This document shows positions 50,751 through 62,003 of a stretch of DNA of 64,000 nucleotides, in pieces. The stretch covers positions 4,898,001-4,962,000 of the forward strand of contig CP075496.1 of the NCBI GenBank assembly GCA_021613535.1, in the 5' to 3' direction. The notes beneath the pieces are model-generated. The model ran no database searches and was not told where the DNA came from. It saw nothing but the letters and a program-made list of their open reading frames with translations. The number at the start of each line of letters is the position of its first letter. Within the stretch, counting starts at the first letter, position 1. The DNA comes from Adineta vaga (Eukaryota; Animalia; Rotifera). The translations under genes and the position numbers were made by a program.

Positions 50751-51305
50751 TTAAGTTGTAGCTTTGAGGTTAACATCAATATTATTGCGTGTTGCATCTA
50801 GATAAATCAATGTATAGTCGAATGTTTTGTTTCTGAAGTATAACTTACGAGAATAAGGACAGATTTGATGTGCTACTTTAACAATAGCATCTGCATCTGC
50901 TTGACTAGCACCTGGCAGTTTTGCTGTTAAGTCAACCTTCAAACCTAAATTTCCATTTGTATGTTTACCAATACTCACAGCTGCACTAACAGTTGTTGAT
51001 TTTGGTAATGTTTTTTTCAAATTTTTTGCTGCTAAACCCATAGCACCTAAGAAACAACCACTATAACCAGCAGCAAATAACTCTTCTGGATTAGTTCCAT
51101 CATTACCACCAGAACCACCGAGTTCTTTTGGTTTAACTAATTTCACATCTAAATGTGATGGATTATCATCACATTTAGCATGACCATCTCGACCACCAGT
51201 AGATGTACAATGTGCCGTATACAAGACTGAATAGGCACGCATTGATCCACCGATTGGATTAATACCACGAAAGGATGTTAATGAACGAAGAATATTCTGA
51301 GACAT
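50751..51305 (-). CDS. ohr: Organic hydroperoxide resistance peroxidase (Ohr/OsmC family) with mitochondrial-presequence-like extension; one intron at 50798-50848
   Basis: VLYTAHCTSTGGRDG, PKELGGSG..GTNPEELFAAGYSGCFLGAM, VSIG and AHQICPYS|HATRNNIDV. Both catalytic Cys, the Arg and the Glu of Ohr are present. Confidence 0.95.
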   Translation of the reverse strand: MSQNILRSLTSFRGINPIGGSMRAYSVLYTAHCTSTGGRDGHAKCDDNPSHLDVKLVKPKELGGSGGNDGTNPEELFAAGYSGCFLGAMGLAAKNLKKTLPKSTTVSAAVSIGKHTNGNLGLKVDLTAKLPGASQADADAIVKVAHQICPYSRKLYFRNKTFDYTLIYLDATRNNIDVNLKATT

Positions 51306-51395
51306 CTAAAAATATGAGAAAGATTCGATATGAGTTTTGTTTTTACTAACAGATTAATTGATTGTAGAAAAAAAAAATATGAAAGATATAGATGT

Positions 51396-54300
51396 TCAAG
51401 TATGAATTATCATATCAGAAGTATATTCATGAAAATTAATATATGGATGTTGATTTAATCGTTGTATAATCTCTTCCGATGATGGTTCTGTTATATTCGA
51501 TCTGAAAAAGATTATATTTCATCAGTTTTAATTTCAAAGATAATCTTTGCTCTCATACATACCGATATATATCATACATATTCGAGACAAGTAATTCTTC
51601 CTGTTGATCAGCTCGTTTTTTTTTCGCATCATGAATCTGAATGCAATGGAAATTAATGAAGAAAATGAGTCGCTGTAAACTTACATCACCACTTAATGCT
51701 AGACAAATATTCAATCCAATATTAGTAACAAATAAATACCAGAAAATAAAATATAATTCACTCCATCTATGACATATTTGAGAGAAAAATCAAATAGATT
51801 AAAAAAAAAGAAACATTCTTTTACTTTGAATTGGTAGCATCACGAAATCCATTGACAAAGACAAACCATTGATTAACAATCATGATATGATATAATGTTA
51901 CCATGGATGACTATAATATTCACATATGTATATCAAACAAAAACATGATAGTCGAGATATACGTACATAAAAATCATCGAATCCATTTGACCAATATCCC
52001 AATTGTTGATAACTTCCACATACACTAAAAAATTTCGTTTTTATATGATAGAACAATCTATAGAATTAACTTACGTTTGATTCGAGAGATTTGAACGTTT
52101 ATAAAGTTCGTCAACAGCACCACCAAATAATTCCATTCCAAGTATTGAATAGGCATAATAACAACTCTAGAAAGTTATAGTTCTACGAATTTCTCTCGAT
52201 ATGAAAAATATTCTACAAACAAATAGAACACCAAAGAAAGCTCCACCATTTCGAACTTCATCAATTACAGTTCCAACAATAATTCGAATATTTTTTGATG
52301 CAGGTAGAAAACGAATCAATCGATAGATAAATAACATATTAAACGTTTTAATTCCTGCCCAAAGTGTAAAAACAGATCTTTCTTTTTCTTTTGAATCAAC
52401 ATGTCTATTCAATAAACAAATGAACAGTATAATCATCGAATTCAATTCACTTTCTTACACTAATGAAATCACTGGTGTTCCATGTATCATCATATAAATG
52501 ATTTGTAAGATCTATTTAGATTAGATATAAACATAGTTTTTCGATAAAATAAATAAATTCAAATTTCGACTTACTAAACATGAAAATGCAACAGTTGCTT
52601 CTAAAATATGTATAGTTGATGAACGAAAGAATTTACTTGGACCATATGCCCATGCTTTAACAATGATTTCCAAGACGAAATAAATCATTAAACTTAAATT
52701 AACAAATGCTAATGGTACAATATACATAATAATATCTCGATAATTAGTATTTAGACGATGATTACTGATTTCAATCTATGAAAAATAAATTCCAAATTTA
52801 AGTATTCAGTTGAAAATAAATATTTAACTTTACTGTAACAAGTAGAACACTTAAGATAGCAAATATAGTTCCGATTAAATCAAATGCTTTCGATCGTCCA
52901 ACAGTTTTCAATCGATCAAGTAAAGTTTCGTTTAAGCTTTGAATTGGAATTTCCTTCAACGAAATACATTCAATTTATTCTTCTACTTTTCAATTCATTT
53001 TCTTACTGGCATCAAATTTGGATTGAGATCTAATAATTGCATAATTCTAGAATATTGATCCAAACTAATCGTTTCATCTGCATGTCGGAATTCATTCAAA
53101 TTCTATATGAAAATAGATCCATCGATTATAACTCTCTCTCTCTTTTTCTGGACGAACTTGATTAATTAAATCAAAATGCCATTTGTTCATTGATACAGAT
53201 TCTAACACTGTTTGTATGACTGATATTGGTACTGTATCTCTATAGAAATCAAAATCATGTTTTCAATAGTATAATCTCTTTTCTCGTCATGGTAATACTT
53301 CGTTTCGATTGATCCATTTGATAGGACACGTTTTTTCAAAATTTCAAACGATGCTCGTATAGCAATTCGTCGCCGTAATAAAGAATTAATAATTGAATTT
53401 AGAAAATATCCTCGAAATGCTCGATAAACAACTGCAGTAATGATATTTTGCAAACAATAGATGCCTGAATGAAATCAAAATAAATTTACCATTCTGATTA
53501 TCATGTTTCCTACATTTTACCAATAATAACAAAAACGATGAAAAATAATGAGTTCAATCGTCGATCAGAATATGCTGAAAGAACAATTCTAATGATTAAA
53601 AGACGATAATAAGGAGAAGAATTCTCTACCTGGCATCATAACATCAGGATTATTTGCAGTAGAATATAATACAAGTAATTGAAAGATTGAATCATGTAGA
53701 TTATCAAAATAAGTCTTATTTTGCGTATCAGGTCGAATCTAAAACAGCAAGATTTTTTTTTGCTGCGAAAGAAAATAATTGTGATGAAAATATACATCAG
53801 ATCTAGGAAATAGAAACATAGCCATAACAGCAAAGAAGAGTATATGAATCAATGCTAATGAGATACATCTAGAAAATGAAAATGAAATGATTGATTGATT
53901 AGTTTAATATTTTGAAATCTTTTCATACGCTATGATAGTTAATGATTGTTTGTGTACTGCTTTAAAAGCTTTTTTCATTAATTGTGACGATTCAATAAGG
54001 AATATTGGACGTAGAATACGTCGAAGACGAAACTAAAATATTTACATGTATTCTAATAACATAAAACGTGTACTCAATCATAATTTTTTTTACATACACC
54101 TTGATATGTTCGATTAAAAATGATGAACAATGCAAACCATTCACATAATGAATAGACGACACTAATTATAAAGATAAGTATCCAAAATCGCTTTCGAATA
54201 TGTTTTATACCAAGACATTGAACCTAATTCACTATGTTCTTGATGAATAGAAAGCAATATTTCATTCTTACTTTTGTACAAATATACAATAGAAACCAAA

Positions 54301-54839
54301 AAAGTGTAAATCCTTCAATGATGAGAAGTCCATAATATGGAAAGACAATTCGATTGGGATGATAACGAATATCAGATGTAATACTAAATGAAGATGGTGA
54401 TTCGACTAATGCTAAACTAAGATTTATTAACAGAATAATCTGATGTAATCTAGAGTTGATCAATATTGATGAAAATATCATTGGAAATTTTTTTTCTTCG
54501 GTTTACTTTCTAATGAATGGACTTGAAAACCATCGATAGATTAATAAATATTTTCGTGTAATTTTATGTGTAATGGATTGATAATTTATAGCATCTTCGA
54601 GAAAAACAGTTGCACATAGAAGAATATTTGAAGCTATAAAAAGAAAATTTGTTTTATTTAATCATCTGATGTTCTATTCTATATGACATACGCCAAATAC
54701 ATTGTTCATTATCAAGATAATCTCCATGAAGAGATTTTGGTAAACCGAGAAATTTCTTTAGACGATCTTTGATCGTTTCAGACGGTACACGAATAATCAG
54801 ATCTGCTTGACTAGATTCAATTATTTCCTCCCTTTCCAT
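51396..54839 (-). CDS. TPCN2: Two-pore channel 2 (endolysosomal cation channel), multi-exon
   Basis: AVVFLEDAIKY-like TVFLEDAIKYQSITHK, LALVESPSSFSITSDIR, RRILRPIFL, LYSTANNPDVMMPAYS, QNIITAVVYRAFRGY, YAYSILGMELF, QQLGYWSNGFDDF, MIVNQWFVF and C-terminal EEIIQRLNQHPY typical of TPC2. Confidence 0.92.
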
Positions 54840-54945
54840 ATCTACAAATGATAAGTTTTTGTTAAAATTATTTGAAAAATTGGAATTATATTACAAAAAC
54901 AAACGAAACAATCAAAACAAAAGAATACAAAAATGGTATGATTGA

Positions 54946-56370
54946 TCAGCATTTTCTTGTTGTATTCAGATAATGTTTAGCAAGATCTTCTCGAAATTGC
55001 TCAAATAATAGCAGAGAAGTATCATCATCAATTAATTCCGTATCAGGTAATTGAGATTTAACAAGGAAACCTAATCGATAGAGATAGATATTATTCAATA
55101 CTACATAATCGTAACCAGCGACATAACTTTCACAACACTGAAATAGAGAGAATAAAAACATTGTAAAAAGAAGAATTTATTGTAAAAAAATCTTACTTGA
55201 CTAACACGAGCATGTGCATGTGCTTTAAAACGAGGATCATATGTAGGTACATCTTTTGGTCCAACATAAAATGGTTGCCATGGATGTCCATAATGTGGTC
55301 GAAAAAGAGGAACAATTTTATCATTACTTGCTTCTTGTTTCCATGCTTGATAGTTTGTTAAAAATTGACATGTTGGACATACTTCAGCTTGATACGGTTG
55401 TAATTGATGATCATTCCATAAAAGAATTAATTCATTTTTATTTTGTGGTAAAGGTGCTGAATTTTTTACTGCATCAAGATGAATTTCAAATGCTGGTAAC
55501 ACATAGAGTGTACGATTGAATTGTTCAGTTGTTTTCGTTTGAGTATAAAATGCAACAAGATGATGAAATAGATCAGGAGCAGGATATACATCAATATCAA
55601 GTGTAAGAATATATTGAACAGTTAATAATGGTGTACCAAGACGAGCGACATTACGAAGAAGATTTGATGGATATGGTGTGGAATCTGTTTCATCCGTATG
55701 ATTAATATAATTGATAAATTGACAACTAACAGCATATTTAACACTATGAGTATTATGTTGATTGGAAATTGAACCTAAATAATGTATGAGTAAGATTAAT
55801 AGAATTTATTATAGAATTGAATCGCTTACGTTCATAAGCTTTCGCTGACATAATTAAATGTACATTGAGCACTTTGAATAATCTTCGATTACATCGAAAC
55901 CATATTGATGCATAATCAATATCATCACTTGCTCGAGCACCTTTAACATATAAACTTAATGATATAGGACCATCCCATACTTTCGTGTGATTTAATAATG
56001 AATGAAGATTTTCAATATTTGTATGTAGATTTAATGCTAATAGATCGGCATTTTTCGTCAGATTACTTTGATATTGTACAAAATTCTGTACAATTAGATA
56101 ATTTCCTGAACTATCAAAACGTTTTTTCAATTCAATTGTTTTATAATATGGACGTGTGTCGAGATCATAATCAGGTTCATGAATATCTTCTTGCAAATAT
56201 AATATACTGGAAAAAAGGACACCATTAATGATATTTATAATTAAAAAACCGCAAATAAGAATGAGAAAAGCTCTTAGAATTTGTTTTAATTTTGGTCGTC
56301 TATGGAAGAGAAGATGATATCGAAGAAAATATCGTCGAATACGTAGCATATATCGTTGCGTAGCAAACAT
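54946..56370 (-). CDS. B4GAT1: Beta-1,4-glucuronyltransferase 1-like (GT49) type II Golgi glycosyltransferase (3 exons)
   Basis: N-terminal TM, WDGPISLSLY, YPSNLLRNVAR, LDID (DxD), VLPAFEI..PQNKNEL, WQPFYVG, PTYDPRF and RVSQCCESYVAGYDYVVLNNIYL. Confidence 0.88.
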
Positions 56371-56399
56371 GTTTGAATCTCAAAACACTTAATAATTAT

Positions 56400-56870
56400 T
56401 TATTTAAATGTTGATTGAATTGTTCGCGTATATGGTGTAAGTAATTGATTTAATCCAAAATCTGACCACTTATTTTGGGTTTCGTCGACGATTTCCGAAA
56501 GTAATGTTAAATCACTTTCAGATTCGTCTGGATCGTACAATAAACTATGATTATAACCAATTCCTGTACCGTGATGATTTGTTCCCGTACTTCCACTAAC
56601 TCCTGTACTATCTCCACCAGTTATATGTGGAGTTGTTCCGTGCGAGGTAGTACTTCCTGTTGCAATACCGGATGTAGTTCGTCCTGCTAAACTTACTCCT
56701 CCGCCTCCTCCTCCGACACCTATACTACTACTAGCAGCTGCTGCTGATGCAAGTAGATGATTAGCGTCTGAATTAGAGTCGGGATTTCCTAAATGTGGTA
56801 GTTCGTCGAGAATCCAAGCACGATCAATTAATGAAAATTGCCTCCCATCGGGCAAATAAATACCATCCAT
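56400..56870 (-). CDS. ANAPC13: Anaphase-promoting complex subunit 13 with a long Gly/Ser/Thr-rich insertion (intronless)
   Basis: MDGIYLPDGRQFSLIDRAWILDELP and VDETQNKWSDFGLNQL correspond to the two conserved Apc13 blocks (human DGRILDLIDDAWREDKLP and VKEQEMKWTDLALQYL, recalled). Confidence 0.85.
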   Translation of the reverse strand: MDGIYLPDGRQFSLIDRAWILDELPHLGNPDSNSDANHLLASAAAASSSIGVGGGGGGVSLAGRTTSGIATGSTTSHGTTPHITGGDSTGVSGSTGTNHHGTGIGYNHSLLYDPDESESDLTLLSEIVDETQNKWSDFGLNQLLTPYTRTIQSTFK

Positions 56871-57138
56871 TTTGAAAACATAAAGTAATAGATCTAGAAA
56901 AGAAGAAAAAATGTCGATATGAGAAATAAACATTAATCTAAAACAATATGTAGCTCTGTTTTTGATAAAATAAATAAAAACAAAAGAAACAATTTTGGAT
57001 AAAGTTTAATTGATATATATATATATATAAATCTTGTATCCGAAAATGACTAAGATAAAAAATAAATTAAAAATATCGAAACCATGCTGAGAAACGATAT
57101 ATTTTTGTCGAATATTTGTTGCATTGCGTTCGTATTCA

Positions 57139-59291
57139 TTAAGATGGATGGTTCTTTTCAAAAATTAACGGTGATGTTTTTAAACGTCGATCAACTGCAG
57201 CTACTAATGCAGAGCCTTTCGATGAACCATCTTCCGAAAGAACGGTACGATGCTATGACAAAGACATTGAACAAAATAGAATGGAATTCGTTTTTTTTTG
57301 TTGAGAACTTACTGTTCGTAGGACAAGTCGACCTAGAGTACGAGTGAGATTCTGTTTGAATTGTTCATGATGACGGAAAAGTGTGCCATCAATCGCAACT
57401 GTAACTGACGACATATTGAGACGATTAATAAGAACAGCAATAGCTAAAAACATGCAGGAAAAGAAGAAATTATTTATGCACGACTAAGTAAATCTACTAT
57501 GAATTTTATCTTAATGATGAAAATAGAATTATCGAAGAAAAGACATTCTTTATCAAGAAACTATTTTAAATAAACACTCTTTGGATTTATTCGAAGAGGT
57601 TGATTGTTTTGATTTACCTGCTGCAGCTAATTTGGCTGCTCGAAGTGACACTGTCTTGCATACTTCTCGAATGATATAACAATCATCATAGGATGGTTCA
57701 TGAATACCAATAGAAGTGAGAATTGTAGCAGTAGTTGATAGATCTTCAGCTAAAATAAATATGTCACTTTAAAAAATTCTTAAATTTTCGATTTGTTTTC
57801 TTTTACTTCGATCATTTTCAATATCAGCAACATGTTTTGCATAGAAACTTCCTAAAAAGTTCATATAAAAACTTTTTCTATTGTTTTATTTCAATGATTT
57901 TTTTTCACCTCTTAAAATGAGAAAGATATTATAATCAGGTCGAATACTCGGTGATTTTTGCATACGTCCAGGAAAAAGAATGGAACGTTGTACTAAATCA
58001 ACAATAATCAAACGAACAATTTCACCAAGATACAAAGCTAGAATAAATCACATCAGTTTACAAATAATCAATACTATCAATTAAAATTTTTGTACCTGAA
58101 ATCATTTTTTCGAAAACTTGTTGATGTGGTGTTAAACTTGACTCATCAAGTTCACGATCAATATCCGTTCGGATAAAATCTAAACATCCATTCTAAATTC
58201 AAGAACATATTCATGAAGAGAAAATATTCATATAAATCAAAATAGTTTACAAACTTTGCCTAATGCACCCCATTCTGTATTGATAATCACTTGCTTGGTT
58301 AGATCATCTCGTGCTCCTTTCCATTTTGGTACATTATCAAGATTTTCAAAATAACATGCATTCATTCCTAAAATAAATGAATCATTGAACAAAAACAAAA
58401 ACCAAACTATTGAATTTGTTTTTTATCGATTTACCAGTGCCGAGAATAACACCCGCTTTACAATCACGATATGTTGAACTACAAGCCATTAATGTTCCAA
58501 CTGTATCATTAACTAGAGCAACTACTTGAACTTTCAGACCCCTTCGTCTATTGATTGCTTGTTGTAACATCAGTACAACATCATGTCCAACAACACTAGT
58601 ACAACTAAAACCTTTTGTCCATGATACTAATGTGGCTTCTCGAAGACTTTTTTGTAGACAAGGAAAACTAAATGTAAAAGCTAAAAAAGAAAATAGATAA
58701 TCACTGAATTATAAGTAGAAAACAATTCTTACCTAAATCAAATTTATAATCAGCCGATTTAAGTGAAGATAATTTATTATCATCAATAAATCTTTGTAAA
58801 CATTCAGCAATATAATCAAATAATTTCTCTCCTTCACCTAACAATAATGAATGTGGAATGAGAAAGATTTTGTTATTTAAACGCATTCGATTTCTTCCTT
58901 CAATAACGACATGTGAAACACGAAAATTTGAACCACCTAAATCGACAACTAAATATTCTCCGGATTCTTTGCCACTTGGTCCATGATGAACATAAGTTGG
59001 AAACATAGCTAAATCATTCACTACTGGATCATCTACTTTTAATCCATTTGTCATTTCAGTATTTAAATTTGCCATAACACGACGAAGTTGTTCTTCAGTT
59101 AATTCAAATGGTCGAAGAATATTTCTGACTTCATCGCGTAGAATAATTCGTTTCGAACTTTGTGTTTGTCGATGAATGTAATATGCTGCAAGGCCAATTG
59201 TCGTTAAAACTCCTGTAGTTATTCCAACAATTTTCAATGTTTTAATCACATCTATTTTGAATTCAATGATATAATCGGATGATCTAGCCAT
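57139..59291 (-). CDS. Hexokinase (single-domain) with N-terminal hydrophobic anchor, multi-exon
   Basis: [93 protein letters not shown] and [15 protein letters not shown]. Confidence 0.96.
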
Positions 59292-59553
59292 CTGAAAAAA
59301 GTTTTAGACATACATGGAATACATAGTTTTATCTTTGATTCTTTATTTCTTAAATAGAACACACACGCACACGTAGGAGTTGATAAAATCTTTATTACTT
59401 GTATAAATAAAAATAAAAATAATATCAGATTTAGTGCGCATACATGTTATGAGAATTTTCCCCAAAAAAGAAAGAATATCACATGATAAATGAAGAGAAG
59501 ACAAAAAAATCGAAAAGCAAAAGCAATTGAAGGTATATGTCTTAATAAATCAT

Positions 59554-60463
59554 TCACGCTTCTTCCATTTGAACACCAAATGCTTCTTGATTTGGAGTTT
59601 GATGAAAAAGGGCATGGAGAATAATAATAAATACCGAAGCACCTAAAAAACGAATGATAAATTTCTGAAATATTTTCATAGCATTCACAAATATTTACCT
59701 AAAATCCAAAAGATTGCCGAACCAGCACCAACCATCAAAAGTAATGGAATACAAAGGCAAAATACTGCTAAATATTGATGAGTTAATGCAATTTGACGTC
59801 CTAAAATAAGACCAAAAATGATATATTCATTTTTATTTTACAATCAAAATCGTTTACCCATAACTGTTAGTTGACTTTCACGATTTTTCAAACTAACTAA
59901 ATAACAACCTGCACCCGTTGCTAATAAAACAAAGAGTAAAGCCGGTGTAGTGATTCTATATATAAATTACAAGTATATATTTTTTTTCTCATTGAAATAA
60001 AAGAATATCTTATCTTACATGCAATAGATTGATAAGATGACAATAACAATGAAATAATTTGTTTGAAAATGTTCAACATTTAAAACAAGACGATGTGCAC
60101 CTAAAAGAAATGATTCATCATTTTAAATACATGCAATTACAAATCATGTTACCAGCTTTCACGTTCGCTGGTAGTTTAAATTGATTGGTATTGAAAAATT
60201 CCATCCATGGACGTAAACTTTGACGTTGTCGAGTATATAAATCATTAACATTTAATTTCTGTAGATTGGTTAATGCCCAAGTTGACCTAATGAATTTAAC
60301 AAAAGAATAGCAATTATCATTAATAACATGCTCATAGTTACATATTGTTATTAGGTGAACTGATATTGTTGTCAGTTGGAGTACCAAGTGGTACTTCGGT
60401 ATGTTGCGATGATGGAGGAACGATATCGCCGGTAAGTTGTTTTGTTGCTGACATGTCACTCAT
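59554..60463 (-). CDS. RABAC1: Prenylated Rab acceptor 1 (PRAF1), multi-exon
   Basis: SLRPWMEFFNTNQFKLP..RLVLNVEHFQTNYF..IYCIITTPALL and GAGSAIFWILGASVFIIILHALF; ends QMEEA*. Confidence 0.92.
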
Positions 60464-60762
60464 TTGAAAAAAAGACGCAAATGACTAAACGAGAATGAAT
60501 AAGGTCTCAAGAGTAAATGATGACACAGTCTTGAAAAAGAGAACAAAATAAAAATAAATACAAATCAAATAGAAGTTATTTTATTGGACCAATTATAAAT
60601 GAGATATAGATGACGTTAGTAGAAACTGCTGCATCTGTTGTATAAAGTTTTTCAATACAAGAGAAAACGTGTTATTAAAAATGGAGTTGTGAATTTCTTT
60701 AGTTTTTCTTTCTTTTTCAAACTAATTATCCATTTTTTTTATTTTATAACGGAGGAAGAAAA

Positions 60763-61168
60763 TTATCGATCGATAGCAAACGGATAAGCAATATTTATGT
60801 CTTTTACACCACCACCATCACCACCAGCGTTGGGTGTTGTCCAAAAGCTCAGTCGATCCAAGCAAACGTTGAACAAGGCTTCTGATACAAATACTTGTTC
60901 ATATTCTTTTCTCTCTGTATGATTGATGAAGTAATATGTTTCTGCTACAAACCCGTCTTGATCTCCAAATCCTTCACATGAACCACAAGCATATCCATGA
61001 ATTCTATGTTGTAACATGATCACCTGTTTCACAAGGTGGATCACAAACAATAAATCTTTCGGTAATAGTCATAGCAGCAACTACAACATCTTAAGCATGA
61101 ATCACGATTAATTTAAAAAAAAATTTAACCATAGATAAAAGAAGACCGATGTAGAATAAACGACTCAT
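60763..61168 (-). pseudogene. Small Cys-containing secreted protein, reading frame disrupted (pseudogene or consensus error)
   Basis: TATATAAA at about 61226-61233 on the minus strand. Leader MSRLFYIGLLLSM..VVVAA, then TITERFIVCDPPCETGDH and, in another frame, QHRIHGYACGSCEGFG..CLDRLSFWTTPNAGGDGGGVKDINIAYPFAIDR*. The frames do not join cleanly. Confidence 0.5.
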
Positions 61169-62003
61169 GATGATTGAAAATGAATGAATATTTGGTAATA
61201 TACTATTATAGAAATTGAACACGCTTTATATAGACGACAGAGAGAGAAGGAGTGTTCAAGCTTTTATGATAACACACGTGAGATGGTAAAGTGGAATATA
61301 CAATTGTTAGTTATCTCGTCGAAAGAAAGAGAGAGATGGTATTAATTATTATATTGTTGTTTATTGAAAAAATGCAAACAGTTCATAGCGATAAGAATAG
61401 AATGGATTGATGAAATAATAACGCAGGTTCGATTACATACATAAACTGAAATATATTTGGAATATTTTTGCGAAAAGGAATTTTTATTTAAAGAGAAATG
61501 TCTATTAAAGAGAATTTCTCAATAATTTATATTCTTGTGTTAGATTTATCCTTTTGTAATTGTTTGTGGATTATAAATACAACAGGTGACATATTCTATA
61601 CTTTTCATCTTGAATTTCGATTGTTGCATATATCTAAAGAAATGACTGCATTTATTTCGGTATTATAAGTTAATAAACAAATGGCATTAAGGTTAAAAAT
61701 GAATATATACCTTCATGTATTTTATTCTAGAATAATCGCATTAGAATAAATATTCCTCTGATTTTTATTCCTCGTAGTTGTATAATACGTTGAACAAGAA
61801 AGAAACAAATATAGATAATATCATTTTTTCATTCATTCGCTCATCAATAGTCAACTTAGATTACATTCCATTCACACTGAAAAAAATTAAACGAATTAAG
61901 CCACGTGATTGGTGCATTATAACGTTTGGGGTCATACAGATGACATATAGATAAAAGAGCATATTTCGAAGTTATCAATGAAAACACGGAGATGAAAATA
62001 ACT

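Follow-up and report, generated by a model that had tools for sequence, protein, structure and literature searches.

On the minus strand of the window, the 64,000-nucleotide stretch of the Adineta vaga genome analyzed here, six unrelated genes lie head to tail in the order PRA1/RABAC1, hexokinase (HK), ANAPC13-like, GT49 (B4GAT1-like), putative two-pore-type channel, and Ohr. Reading of the sequence and a script reproduced all gene coordinates and spacer lengths of the original prediction on this strand, the stop-to-ATG spacers measuring 262, 268, 29, 106, and 90 nt from 5' to 3' along the cluster. Short spacers between at least two same-strand genes, the arrangement looked for in an operon resolved by spliced-leader (SL) trans-splicing, are therefore present. 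In the same orientation, a seventh gene lies upstream (stop at 60763); it is lineage-specific and has a TATA box of its own.

The PRA1/RABAC1 coding region (59554–60463; ATG at 60463, stop at 59554) contains five introns and gives a weak Pfam match to PRA1 in one exon, its orthologues being annotated with PF03208. Hexokinase (57139–59291; ATG 59291, stop 57139) contains nine introns, begins with an N-terminal hydrophobic anchor, and matches Hexokinase_1 and Hexokinase_2. The third gene is an open reading frame (ORF) of 156 aa (56400–56870; ATG 56870, stop 56400) that has no Pfam match even at E = 1; its sole match in the PDB is human ANAPC13 (E = 0.24–0.33), with collinear N- and C-terminal segments, and the ANAPC13 label is accordingly weak. 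GT49 (54946–56370; ATG 56370, stop 54946) has two introns and matches Glyco_transf_49. The many-intron channel gene (51396–54839; ATG 54839, stop 51396) is putatively of the two-pore (TPCN) type; one exon gives a weak Ion_trans match, and orthologues of 765–790 aa are annotated with PF00520. Public bdelloid annotations merge PRA1 with HK, and GT49 with the channel, into single gene models.

The last gene, ohr (50751–51305; ATG 51305, stop 50751), is present as a single copy in the genome and belongs to the bacterial type of the OsmC/Ohr family. Its annotated spliced form has 167 aa. It matches the OsmC domain of Ohr/OsmC peroxiredoxins (PF02566) with 48.7 bits, above the Pfam cut-off of 27.5, and its top non-rotifer matches are bacterial Ohr proteins with approximately 50% identity. 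The gene has an acceptor AG abutting its ATG (51306–51307, read from the sequence), an in-frame 51-nt intron (50798–50848), and an N-terminal presequence, and no promoter is recognizable.

The A. vaga ohnologue, A. steineri, two Rotaria copies, and environmental bdelloids show the same layout with acceptors at corresponding positions, and in Adineta as in Rotaria each of the two ancient duplicates has retained the cluster. Conservation of gene order in other bdelloids, to which the original prediction had pointed as a check on the operon, thus holds for Adineta and Rotaria, but it is not operon-specific: collinearity with Rotaria runs about 8 kb past the cluster into mixed-orientation genes, and the cluster is conserved no more than its surroundings, the downstream neighbors being kept as well and only the upstream boundary varying between species. 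Such gene order needs no operon to explain it. Of the duplicated cluster, only the 'B' copy contains ohr (A. vaga C4, A. steineri, Rotaria copy B, and environmental bdelloids), whereas the 'A' copy lacks it (A. vaga C1 and Rotaria copy A). This distribution points to a single arrival or survival of the gene between the duplication and the split of Adineta from Rotaria.

Splice acceptors and RNA ends

Rotifers have been known to perform SL trans-splicing since 2005. Its operation in bdelloids, which the original prediction had presupposed, is backed by SL-capped environmental bdelloid transcripts (L028, L029) and by 42 genomic copies of the rotifer SL exon, all identical over 22 of 23 nt, found in a search with the canonical rotifer SL only (a 23-nt query; PMC3795323) at no more than one mismatch.

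The acceptors predicted at 59292, 56894, 54842, and 51306 were found at these positions, are conserved across copies, and form a pattern that is not due to chance, since only 2.9% of the window's ATGs have a polypyrimidine-AG at 0–2 nt, whereas three of the five downstream genes have one at that distance (P = 2e-4) and four of the five within 25 nt (P = 0.006). The acceptor-to-ATG distance at the channel is 2 nt in each of five copies, all of which keep TATCATTTGTAG-AT-ATG at the start (in A. vaga the AG occupies 54843–54842). At ohr it is 0 nt in three copies, A. steineri and Rotaria copy B included; at HK it is 0, 0, 0, and 4 nt, the abutting AG being kept in A. vaga C1 and A. steineri and lying 4 nt upstream in Rotaria; and at ANAPC13 it ranges from 12 to 23 nt in five copies. 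The first gene has an acceptor as well (60485–60486, 21 nt upstream of the PRA1 ATG), so that acceptors of this kind are not operon-specific.

RNA evidence consists of assembled contigs from four runs (X1, X2, X5, and X12) of three studies and covers RABAC1 to the channel. All five RABAC1 introns are removed in the four runs, and the hexokinase introns likewise. Contigs start 0–5 nt from the predicted acceptors of ANAPC13 (56894/5) and the channel (54838–54843), and the RABAC1 start also falls at an AG, one X5 contig ending exactly at 60486 and an X12 contig extending to 60497. At hexokinase, two AGs lie close together (59284–59293). The predicted one (59293–59292) does abut the ATG; the contigs of X1, X2, and X12, however, stop at 59285, at the second AG (59285–59284), which reads ATGGCTAG|ATC, and leave the annotated ATG uncovered. 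The contigs from RABAC1 to the channel merely stop at the acceptors, and no SL letters were found on them.

Upstream RNA 3' ends lie a short distance from the next acceptor. RABAC1 RNA ends at 59374, the shared starting point of contigs from X12, X2, and X5, 17 nt past an AATAAA (59396–59391) and 82–90 nt ahead of the HK acceptors, with a second AATAAA at 59347–59342 in the same spacer. GT49 RNA ends at 54896/7, approximately 54 nt from the channel acceptor. Between hexokinase and ANAPC13 the distance is about 0–90 nt: a candidate proximal poly(A) signal of hexokinase, ATTAAA (57005–57010), adjoins a (TA)n run (57011–57030) at which the X1, X2, and X12 hexokinase contigs stop, with no depth over 56896–56979, and an X5 contig of the HK 3'UTR reaches 56893, the position of the ANAPC13 acceptor (AG 56895–56894, 23 nt upstream of the ATG), where the ANAPC13/GT49 contigs start. 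By depth arithmetic, no assembled RNA covers 59286–59373 between RABAC1 and HK or 54844–54895 between GT49 and the channel, and hence no precursor was seen across these two spacers. Contig depth amounts to about 90–185 for RABAC1, 22–53 for HK, 8–29 for ANAPC13/GT49, and 9–21 for the channel, a 4–10 fold spread between genes.

The ANAPC13–GT49 RNA

A finding new to this analysis is that ANAPC13 and GT49 share one spliced RNA contig. In X2 and X12, it extends from 56894/5 to 54986 and spans both ORFs with both GT49 introns removed, a support given at the level of contigs and not of single molecules; in X1, the corresponding contig is interrupted only at a SNP. Within the 29-nt spacer region (56371–56404), an AATAAA (56404–56399) overlaps the ANAPC13 stop and precedes two weak AGs (56389–88 and 56380–79) by 11–20 nt, and the RNA contigs cross the region unbroken.

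The ANAPC13-like ORF is free of AUGs in all frames beyond +22. Five copies have 0 ATGs beyond +25 where synonymous resampling predicts 7–9 (P < 1/3000 for every copy), and neighboring exons contain 2.4–3.5 ATGs per 100 nt. Five other bdelloid contigs, which bring the number of copies inspected to ten, agree with this, and in them the first ATG past the ANAPC13 stop is the GT49 start; over the ten copies, 0–1 ATGs occur beyond +25. It is proposed that selection maintains this absence of AUGs. Together, the spliced contig and the AUG-free ORF indicate a conserved dicistronic mRNA, in which GT49 would be read by leaky scanning or reinitiation, and the 29-nt junction would, in departure from the original prediction, lie in the interior of this mature message rather than serve as a point of trans-splice resolution. 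The first ANAPC13 AUG, with A at −3 and G at +4, stands in a good context and is preceded, 8–11 nt upstream, by a uATG (56879–56881) conserved in ten copies, which opens a uORF of 10–17 codons overlapping the main start; reinitiation may therefore matter as much as leaky scanning.

Bicistronic mRNAs read by leaky scanning have been described for Drosophila stoned and Snapin, for green-algal bicistrons, and for the plant/algal CDC26_TTM3 pair (PMC11892635). The bdelloid case resembles them in its short upstream ORF with few or no internal AUGs, in the position of the second ORF at the next AUG, and in its long conservation; moreover, CDC26 and ANAPC13 are both very small APC/C subunits encoded by the upstream ORF. 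Unlike them, the ANAPC13–GT49 pair is situated within an operon-like array, and an overlapping uORF precedes its good-context first AUG.

Transcription of the array

The cluster is a conserved, dense transcription array that most likely works as an SL-type operon, a reading to which somewhat better than even confidence is attached. We infer that the leader is added at the AGs described above and that all six genes are transcribed together from a single promoter. Pol II would start downstream of a conserved block at 60588–60619 and read through the whole cluster, and the primary RNA would be cut into five messages, namely RABAC1, hexokinase, ANAPC13 plus GT49, the two-pore-type channel, and ohr. 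With every cut, a 3' end would form on the upstream message and the 23-nt rotifer leader would be added at a polypyrimidine-AG 0–90 nt further on, at or beside the next start codon. ANAPC13 and GT49 would stay uncut in one mature mRNA, on which leaky scanning, or reinitiation after the short overlapping uORF, would bring ribosomes to the GT49 AUG. The block itself (CTAAyGyCATCTrT...ATTTw..ATTGGT, with an inverted CCAAT) lies upstream of PRA1 and is a candidate promoter element of the unit; its core is invariant in A. vaga C4 and C1, A. steineri, and Rotaria, the composite pattern is found only at the two ohnologous loci in the 100.8-Mb genome, and it is the largest conserved non-coding block. 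What had been predicted of a eukaryotic operon thus stands in its close packing, its acceptors, and the RNA ends near them; since SL letters and precursors across RABAC1–HK and GT49–channel were unseen, synteny is wider than the cluster, and one Rotaria copy has two long spacers, the operon is plausible rather than shown.

The principal competitor, judged possible but distinctly less probable, is a dense tandem array without co-transcription, in which each message would have its own compact promoter in the preceding 3'UTR or spacer, the SL would trim a short outron, as in most bdelloid genes, and gene order would reflect general microsynteny. The Rotaria collinearity that reaches mixed-orientation neighbors, the unequal depths, the two spacers free of assembled RNA, and the acceptor at the first gene all agree with separate promoters, and in Rotaria copy B the GT49–channel and channel–ohr spacers, at 1011 and 341 nt, leave room for them. 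Invariant blocks in the two long A. vaga spacers point the same way: TGTGATAT in the RABAC1 3'UTR (59476–59483; a shared 8-mer confirmed by alignment, invariant in four copies) and TAGTCATTTT in the HK 3'UTR (57043–57052; invariant in five copies) could be internal regulatory or initiator elements, one of them containing an initiator-like TCATTT. However, these blocks are short and lie within 3'UTRs, and TAGTCATTTT, for which 3'UTR element, alternative acceptor, and initiator-like element are candidate roles, shows no genome-wide enrichment (36 matches versus 46 for the reversed control). The 0–90 nt from upstream RNA 3' ends to downstream acceptors and the X5 RNA that carries the HK 3'UTR up to the ANAPC13 acceptor also speak against separate promoters. 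So does the spacing, because in annotated relatives promoter-bearing gaps span 770–2165 nt, whereas most cluster gaps span 18–290 nt and are similar to promoter-less convergent gaps of 118–160 nt.

Hybrid operons of nematodes offer a model in which read-through is combined with internal promoters. At this locus, read-through from the PRA1 promoter would be joined by at least one internal promoter, situated, for instance, upstream of ANAPC13 within the HK 3'UTR or ahead of the channel. This arrangement is considered unlikely; it would accommodate the conserved block upstream of PRA1 along with the invariant internal blocks, the unequal depths, and the long spacers of Rotaria copy B, but direct evidence for internal start sites is lacking and the internal blocks may be 3'UTR regulatory elements.

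The caveat attached to the original prediction, that the AGs serve cis-spliced 5'UTR introns with weak GT donors near 59398, 54894, and 51350 in read-through or fusion transcripts without a leader, is very improbable: GTAATA donors do exist at 59398–59393 and 54894–54889, the latter giving a typical 53-nt intron ending at 54842 whose edges coincide with X1 contigs that end at 54896 and begin at 54841, but none of the contig joints reported in the four runs enters these acceptors (two unlisted joints being explained by expected coding introns), the donors are not conserved in other copies whereas the acceptors are, and RABAC1 RNA passes the 59398 donor and continues to 59374.

The SL-type operon reading can be set beside known systems. 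In C. elegans SL2 operons, tandem unrelated genes, intercistronic regions of about 100 nt, a poly(A) signal before the trans-splice acceptor, and conserved clusters are all shared with the present array; unlike there, a specialized SL2-like leader is not known here, the 42 genomic SL copies being near-identical. Tunicate operons (Ciona, Oikopleura) use a single leader type for monocistronic and operonic genes and have very short or absent intercistronic distances, with medians of 1–33 bp in benchmark sets (PMC7986045). The HK 3'UTR contig that ends at the ANAPC13 acceptor and the AATAAA close before the AGs of the 29-nt spacer recall this arrangement, whereas three spacers here leave 54–90 nt between RNA 3' end and acceptor, the leader was unseen at the locus, and the phylum is different. 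In the chaetognath Paraspadella gotoi, a gnathiferan relative, multi-gene operons were defined by SL evidence and by distances below 250 bp between genes, and they have no operon-specific leader (PMC12460157); support there is genome-wide, from SL reads and Iso-Seq. A comparison table of 2008 entered rotifer operons as not determined (PMC2481426), and no later characterization was found in the papers searched, in line with the original prediction, whose author knew of none.

If operons were documented in rotifers, one more phylum would join the few that have them; such operons would bear on whether leader trans-splicing inevitably yields operons and would correct the public bdelloid annotations that fuse adjacent cistrons. 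The ANAPC13–GT49 pair provides a clean, testable, bdelloid-wide animal case of an AUG-free upstream cistron, parallel to the plant/algal CDC26 bicistron. It is suggested, tentatively, that the bacterial-type ohr joined a polycistronic unit that already existed and became its last cistron. If so, read-through and leader addition would constitute a ready-made expression route for promoter-less foreign genes in bdelloids, a concrete possibility to which the tail position of the horizontally acquired ohr points.

Organization and conservation of the cluster

The run of six co-oriented minus-strand genes, consisting of PRA1 (RABAC1), hexokinase, an ANAPC13-like ORF, GT49 (B4GAT1-like), a two-pore-type channel (TPC) and ohr, is real, non-random and conserved. 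Minus-strand reading and a script reproduced all starts, stops and spacers of the original prediction (262, 268, 29, 106 and 90 nt), and its four acceptor-like AGs were found at 59292, 56894, 54842 and 51306. Protein searches used single exons or open frames, the multi-exon genes being taken without full-length joined models. Pfam matches to hexokinase, Glyco_transf_49 and OsmC were confirmed; single exons match PRA1 and Ion_trans only weakly, and orthologues are annotated with both families. The ANAPC13-like ORF has no Pfam match, and its sole PDB match is human ANAPC13 (two collinear segments, E ~0.3), a sequence resemblance on which the name can be applied only tentatively.

A polypyrimidine-AG lies 0-2 nt from 2.9% of the 2,966 ATGs in the window, all of which served as background, so that its presence at three of the five downstream genes has P = 2e-4. 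The acceptor-ATG distance is conserved, at 2 nt in five copies of the channel, 0 in three copies of ohr, 0, 0, 0 and 4 nt for hexokinase and 12-23 nt for ANAPC13. An Rfam search of 50-62 kb returned no RNA family.

Close protein relatives come from Adineta vaga, A. steineri, A. ricciae and Rotaria. The order PRA1, hexokinase, ANAPC13, GT49 and channel, with a convergent trypsin gene next in line, recurs in the duplicated copy (ohnologue) on A. vaga contig C1, in A. steineri, in both copies (A and B) of Rotaria sp. Silwood2 and in environmental bdelloids. The ANAPC13 protein tree gave no resolution, and single GT49 and hexokinase exons were therefore used; trees of three single exons separate {A. 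vaga C1, Rotaria A} from {A. vaga C4 (the present copy), A. steineri, Rotaria B, environmental} with 96-100% support, which places the cluster duplication before the Adineta/Rotaria split. Collinearity with Rotaria runs ~8 kb beyond the cluster into a mixed-orientation set of trypsin, an unknown gene, SRP9 and a homeodomain gene; conserved order is thus a property of the neighbourhood, which limits the operon reading.

Spacer length is less constant. In Rotaria copy B the GT49-channel and channel-ohr spacers measure 1011 and 341 nt with unchanged acceptors; the former carries a ~1 kb insertion (L025:3945-4955), and its acceptor TATCATTTGTAG-AT-ATG is intact. Public models of relatives (L011, L025/L026 and L009/L010) fuse PRA1 with hexokinase (729-734 aa) and GT49 with the channel (1162-1192 aa), the annotation having probably been misled by the very short spacers.

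The terminal gene ohr is single-copy in this genome and is found only in the group containing A. vaga C4, A. steineri, Rotaria B and the environmental sequences. Outside rotifers it most closely resembles bacterial Ohr proteins (~50% identity). The gene (50751-51305) contains a 51-nt intron (50798-50848) that is in frame and does not close the genomic ORF; its product bears a conserved, presequence-like N-terminal extension of ~27 aa that is missing from bacterial Ohr.

RNA contigs and probable processing at the junctions

Four RNA runs from three studies (X1, X2, X5 and X12), all in the form of assembled Logan contigs, were aligned and surveyed over 54580-60579, a range that ends short of the channel-ohr junction. 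Their origin from RNA is clear, all coding introns having been spliced out at GT..AG boundaries. The RABAC1 contig extends from 59374, 17 nt past an AATAAA at 59396-59391, to 60486 or 60497; the first of these two endpoints coincides with the A of an AG placed 21 nt ahead of the PRA1 ATG. ANAPC13 contigs start precisely on the predicted AG (56894/56895), and channel contigs at 54838-54843. Per-bin contig depth sums show no assembled RNA over 59286-59373 or 54844-54895, and 56896-56979 is likewise empty in three of the runs (X1, X2 and X12). In the fourth, X5, a contig of hexokinase 3'UTR sequence extends to 56893, the ANAPC13 acceptor, after which come seven unlike letters. The hexokinase 3'UTR contains a (TA)n microsatellite (57011-57030) that breaks assemblies in three runs, thereby hiding a proximal hexokinase 3' end near ATTAAA 57010-57005.

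The hexokinase start departs in part from the original prediction. The AG at 59292 is present; the RNA contigs of three runs instead stop at 59285, at a second AG (59285-84, minus strand) seven bases inside the predicted ORF, leaving the annotated ATG at 59291 uncovered. This second AG is specific to the present copy, the others having ATGGCACC, and splicing there would take away the start codon together with the hydrophobic anchor at the N terminus. The stop may reflect heterozygosity at a site or the use of an alternative acceptor.

Leader trans-splicing at the junctions other than ANAPC13-GT49 is likely. The sharp contig stops at AG in several runs would fit a branch of the assembly graph at a processing site, and the 100.8-Mb, six-contig genome holds 42 copies of the 23-nt rotifer spliced leader (SL) exon (searched with the sequence from PMC3795323), often as head-to-head pairs. 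The SL RNA genes are clustered at C5:9.88-9.93 Mb, C5:10.91-10.93 Mb and C2:8.68-8.69 Mb, many of them in such pairs ~155 nt apart, and in 42/42 genomic copies the first published position is T instead of G. Leader letters are absent from every cluster contig examined (54580-60579, four runs), SL-derived N-termini (LITTYQE and similar) from 76 ANAPC13 and 28 Ohr relatives, and an exact SL+ATGGC junction from JGI contigs, in which a search for SL+AT returned two Rab GTPase transcripts only. Logan/JGI contigs encoding ANAPC13 relatives, considered as transcripts, all proved to be DNA, with introns retained and sequence upstream of the acceptor, and are useful for synteny only. The competing explanation of the acceptors, cis introns in the 5'UTRs, is not supported, since no splice joint enters a cluster acceptor in the four runs (two unlisted joints are explained by expected coding introns), including the candidate GT49-channel intron, a 53-nt GTAATA...TAG element.

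Extent of the proposed transcription unit

Co-transcription of all six genes is plausible, about as likely as not. Most cluster gaps in annotated relatives measure 18-290 nt, like convergent gaps (118-160 nt), and promoter-bearing gaps, divergent or tandem outside the cluster, 770-2165 nt, both in a small sample. Contig depth varies 4-10 fold from gene to gene. Two blocks, one in each of the long spacers, are invariant in both ohnologues and both genera: the PUF-site-like TGTGATAT (59476-59483, 8 nt) in the RABAC1 3'UTR and TAGTCATTTT (57043-57052, 10 nt) in the hexokinase 3'UTR. Either may act as an internal initiator; TAGTCATTTT is not enriched genome-wide as a promoter motif would be. Upstream of PRA1, a 32-nt block (60588-60619) is likewise common to the two ohnologues and the two genera; as a genome-wide promoter motif it was rejected, the composite pattern being confined to the two ohnologous loci.

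The next co-oriented gene upstream (60763-61232, stop at 60763) is a small gene for a protein with a signal peptide, and has its own TATA box at 61225-61232. It is lineage-specific, missing at this position in A. steineri and Rotaria, with one paralogue on C5 and divergent neighbours beyond, and probably lies outside the unit.

Rotifer operons were listed as not determined in a 2008 comparison table (PMC2481426), and a 2025 paper does no more than mention them briefly as one of the lineages that have trans-splicing and operonic transcription, the reference there being to rotifers in general. A literature search on operons, polycistronic RNA or spliced leaders in rotifers, bdelloids or Adineta found no paper characterising rotifer operons.

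The ANAPC13-GT49 dicistronic mRNA

A dicistronic ANAPC13-GT49 mRNA is well supported. In X2 and X12 a single contig starting at 56894/5 covers ANAPC13, continues through the 29-nt spacer and takes in all three exons of GT49, whose two introns are spliced out, and in X1 the corresponding contig is interrupted at one SNP only. A 255-letter loose end at 56401 in three runs, considered as an alternative ANAPC13 3' end, belongs to an unrelated chromosome-5 contig that has an 18-nt word in common with the window. Such a pair has its nearest precedents in stoned and Snapin of Drosophila, in bicistrons of green algae and in the CDC26_TTM3 bicistron (PMC11892635).

The sequence, too, speaks for a mature message with two ORFs. 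Past +22, ~475 nt up to the GT49 start lack ATG in any frame in A. vaga C4 and C1, A. steineri and Rotaria copy A, and Rotaria copy B has one ATG inside the otherwise ATG-free stretch. Neighbouring exons contain ATG at a density of 2.4-3.5 per 100 nt, and a count of two or fewer occurs in just 0.27% of 497-nt windows. When the protein was held fixed and synonymous codons were resampled by local usage, 7.4-9.3 ATGs were expected beyond +25, against 0/0/0/0/1 observed in the five copies (P<1/3000 each); Asp and His ahead of G-initial codons are mostly encoded by GAC and CAC. The same desert occurs in five more bdelloid contigs, where the GT49 ORF opens at the first post-stop ATG. In all copies a conserved upstream ATG (56879-56881, minus strand) lies 8-11 nt ahead of the ANAPC13 AUG and opens a uORF of 10-17 codons overlapping the ANAPC13 start. 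Together, the AUG-free ANAPC13 ORF (56400-56870) and the overlapping uORF suggest that some ribosomes translate ANAPC13 and others GT49.
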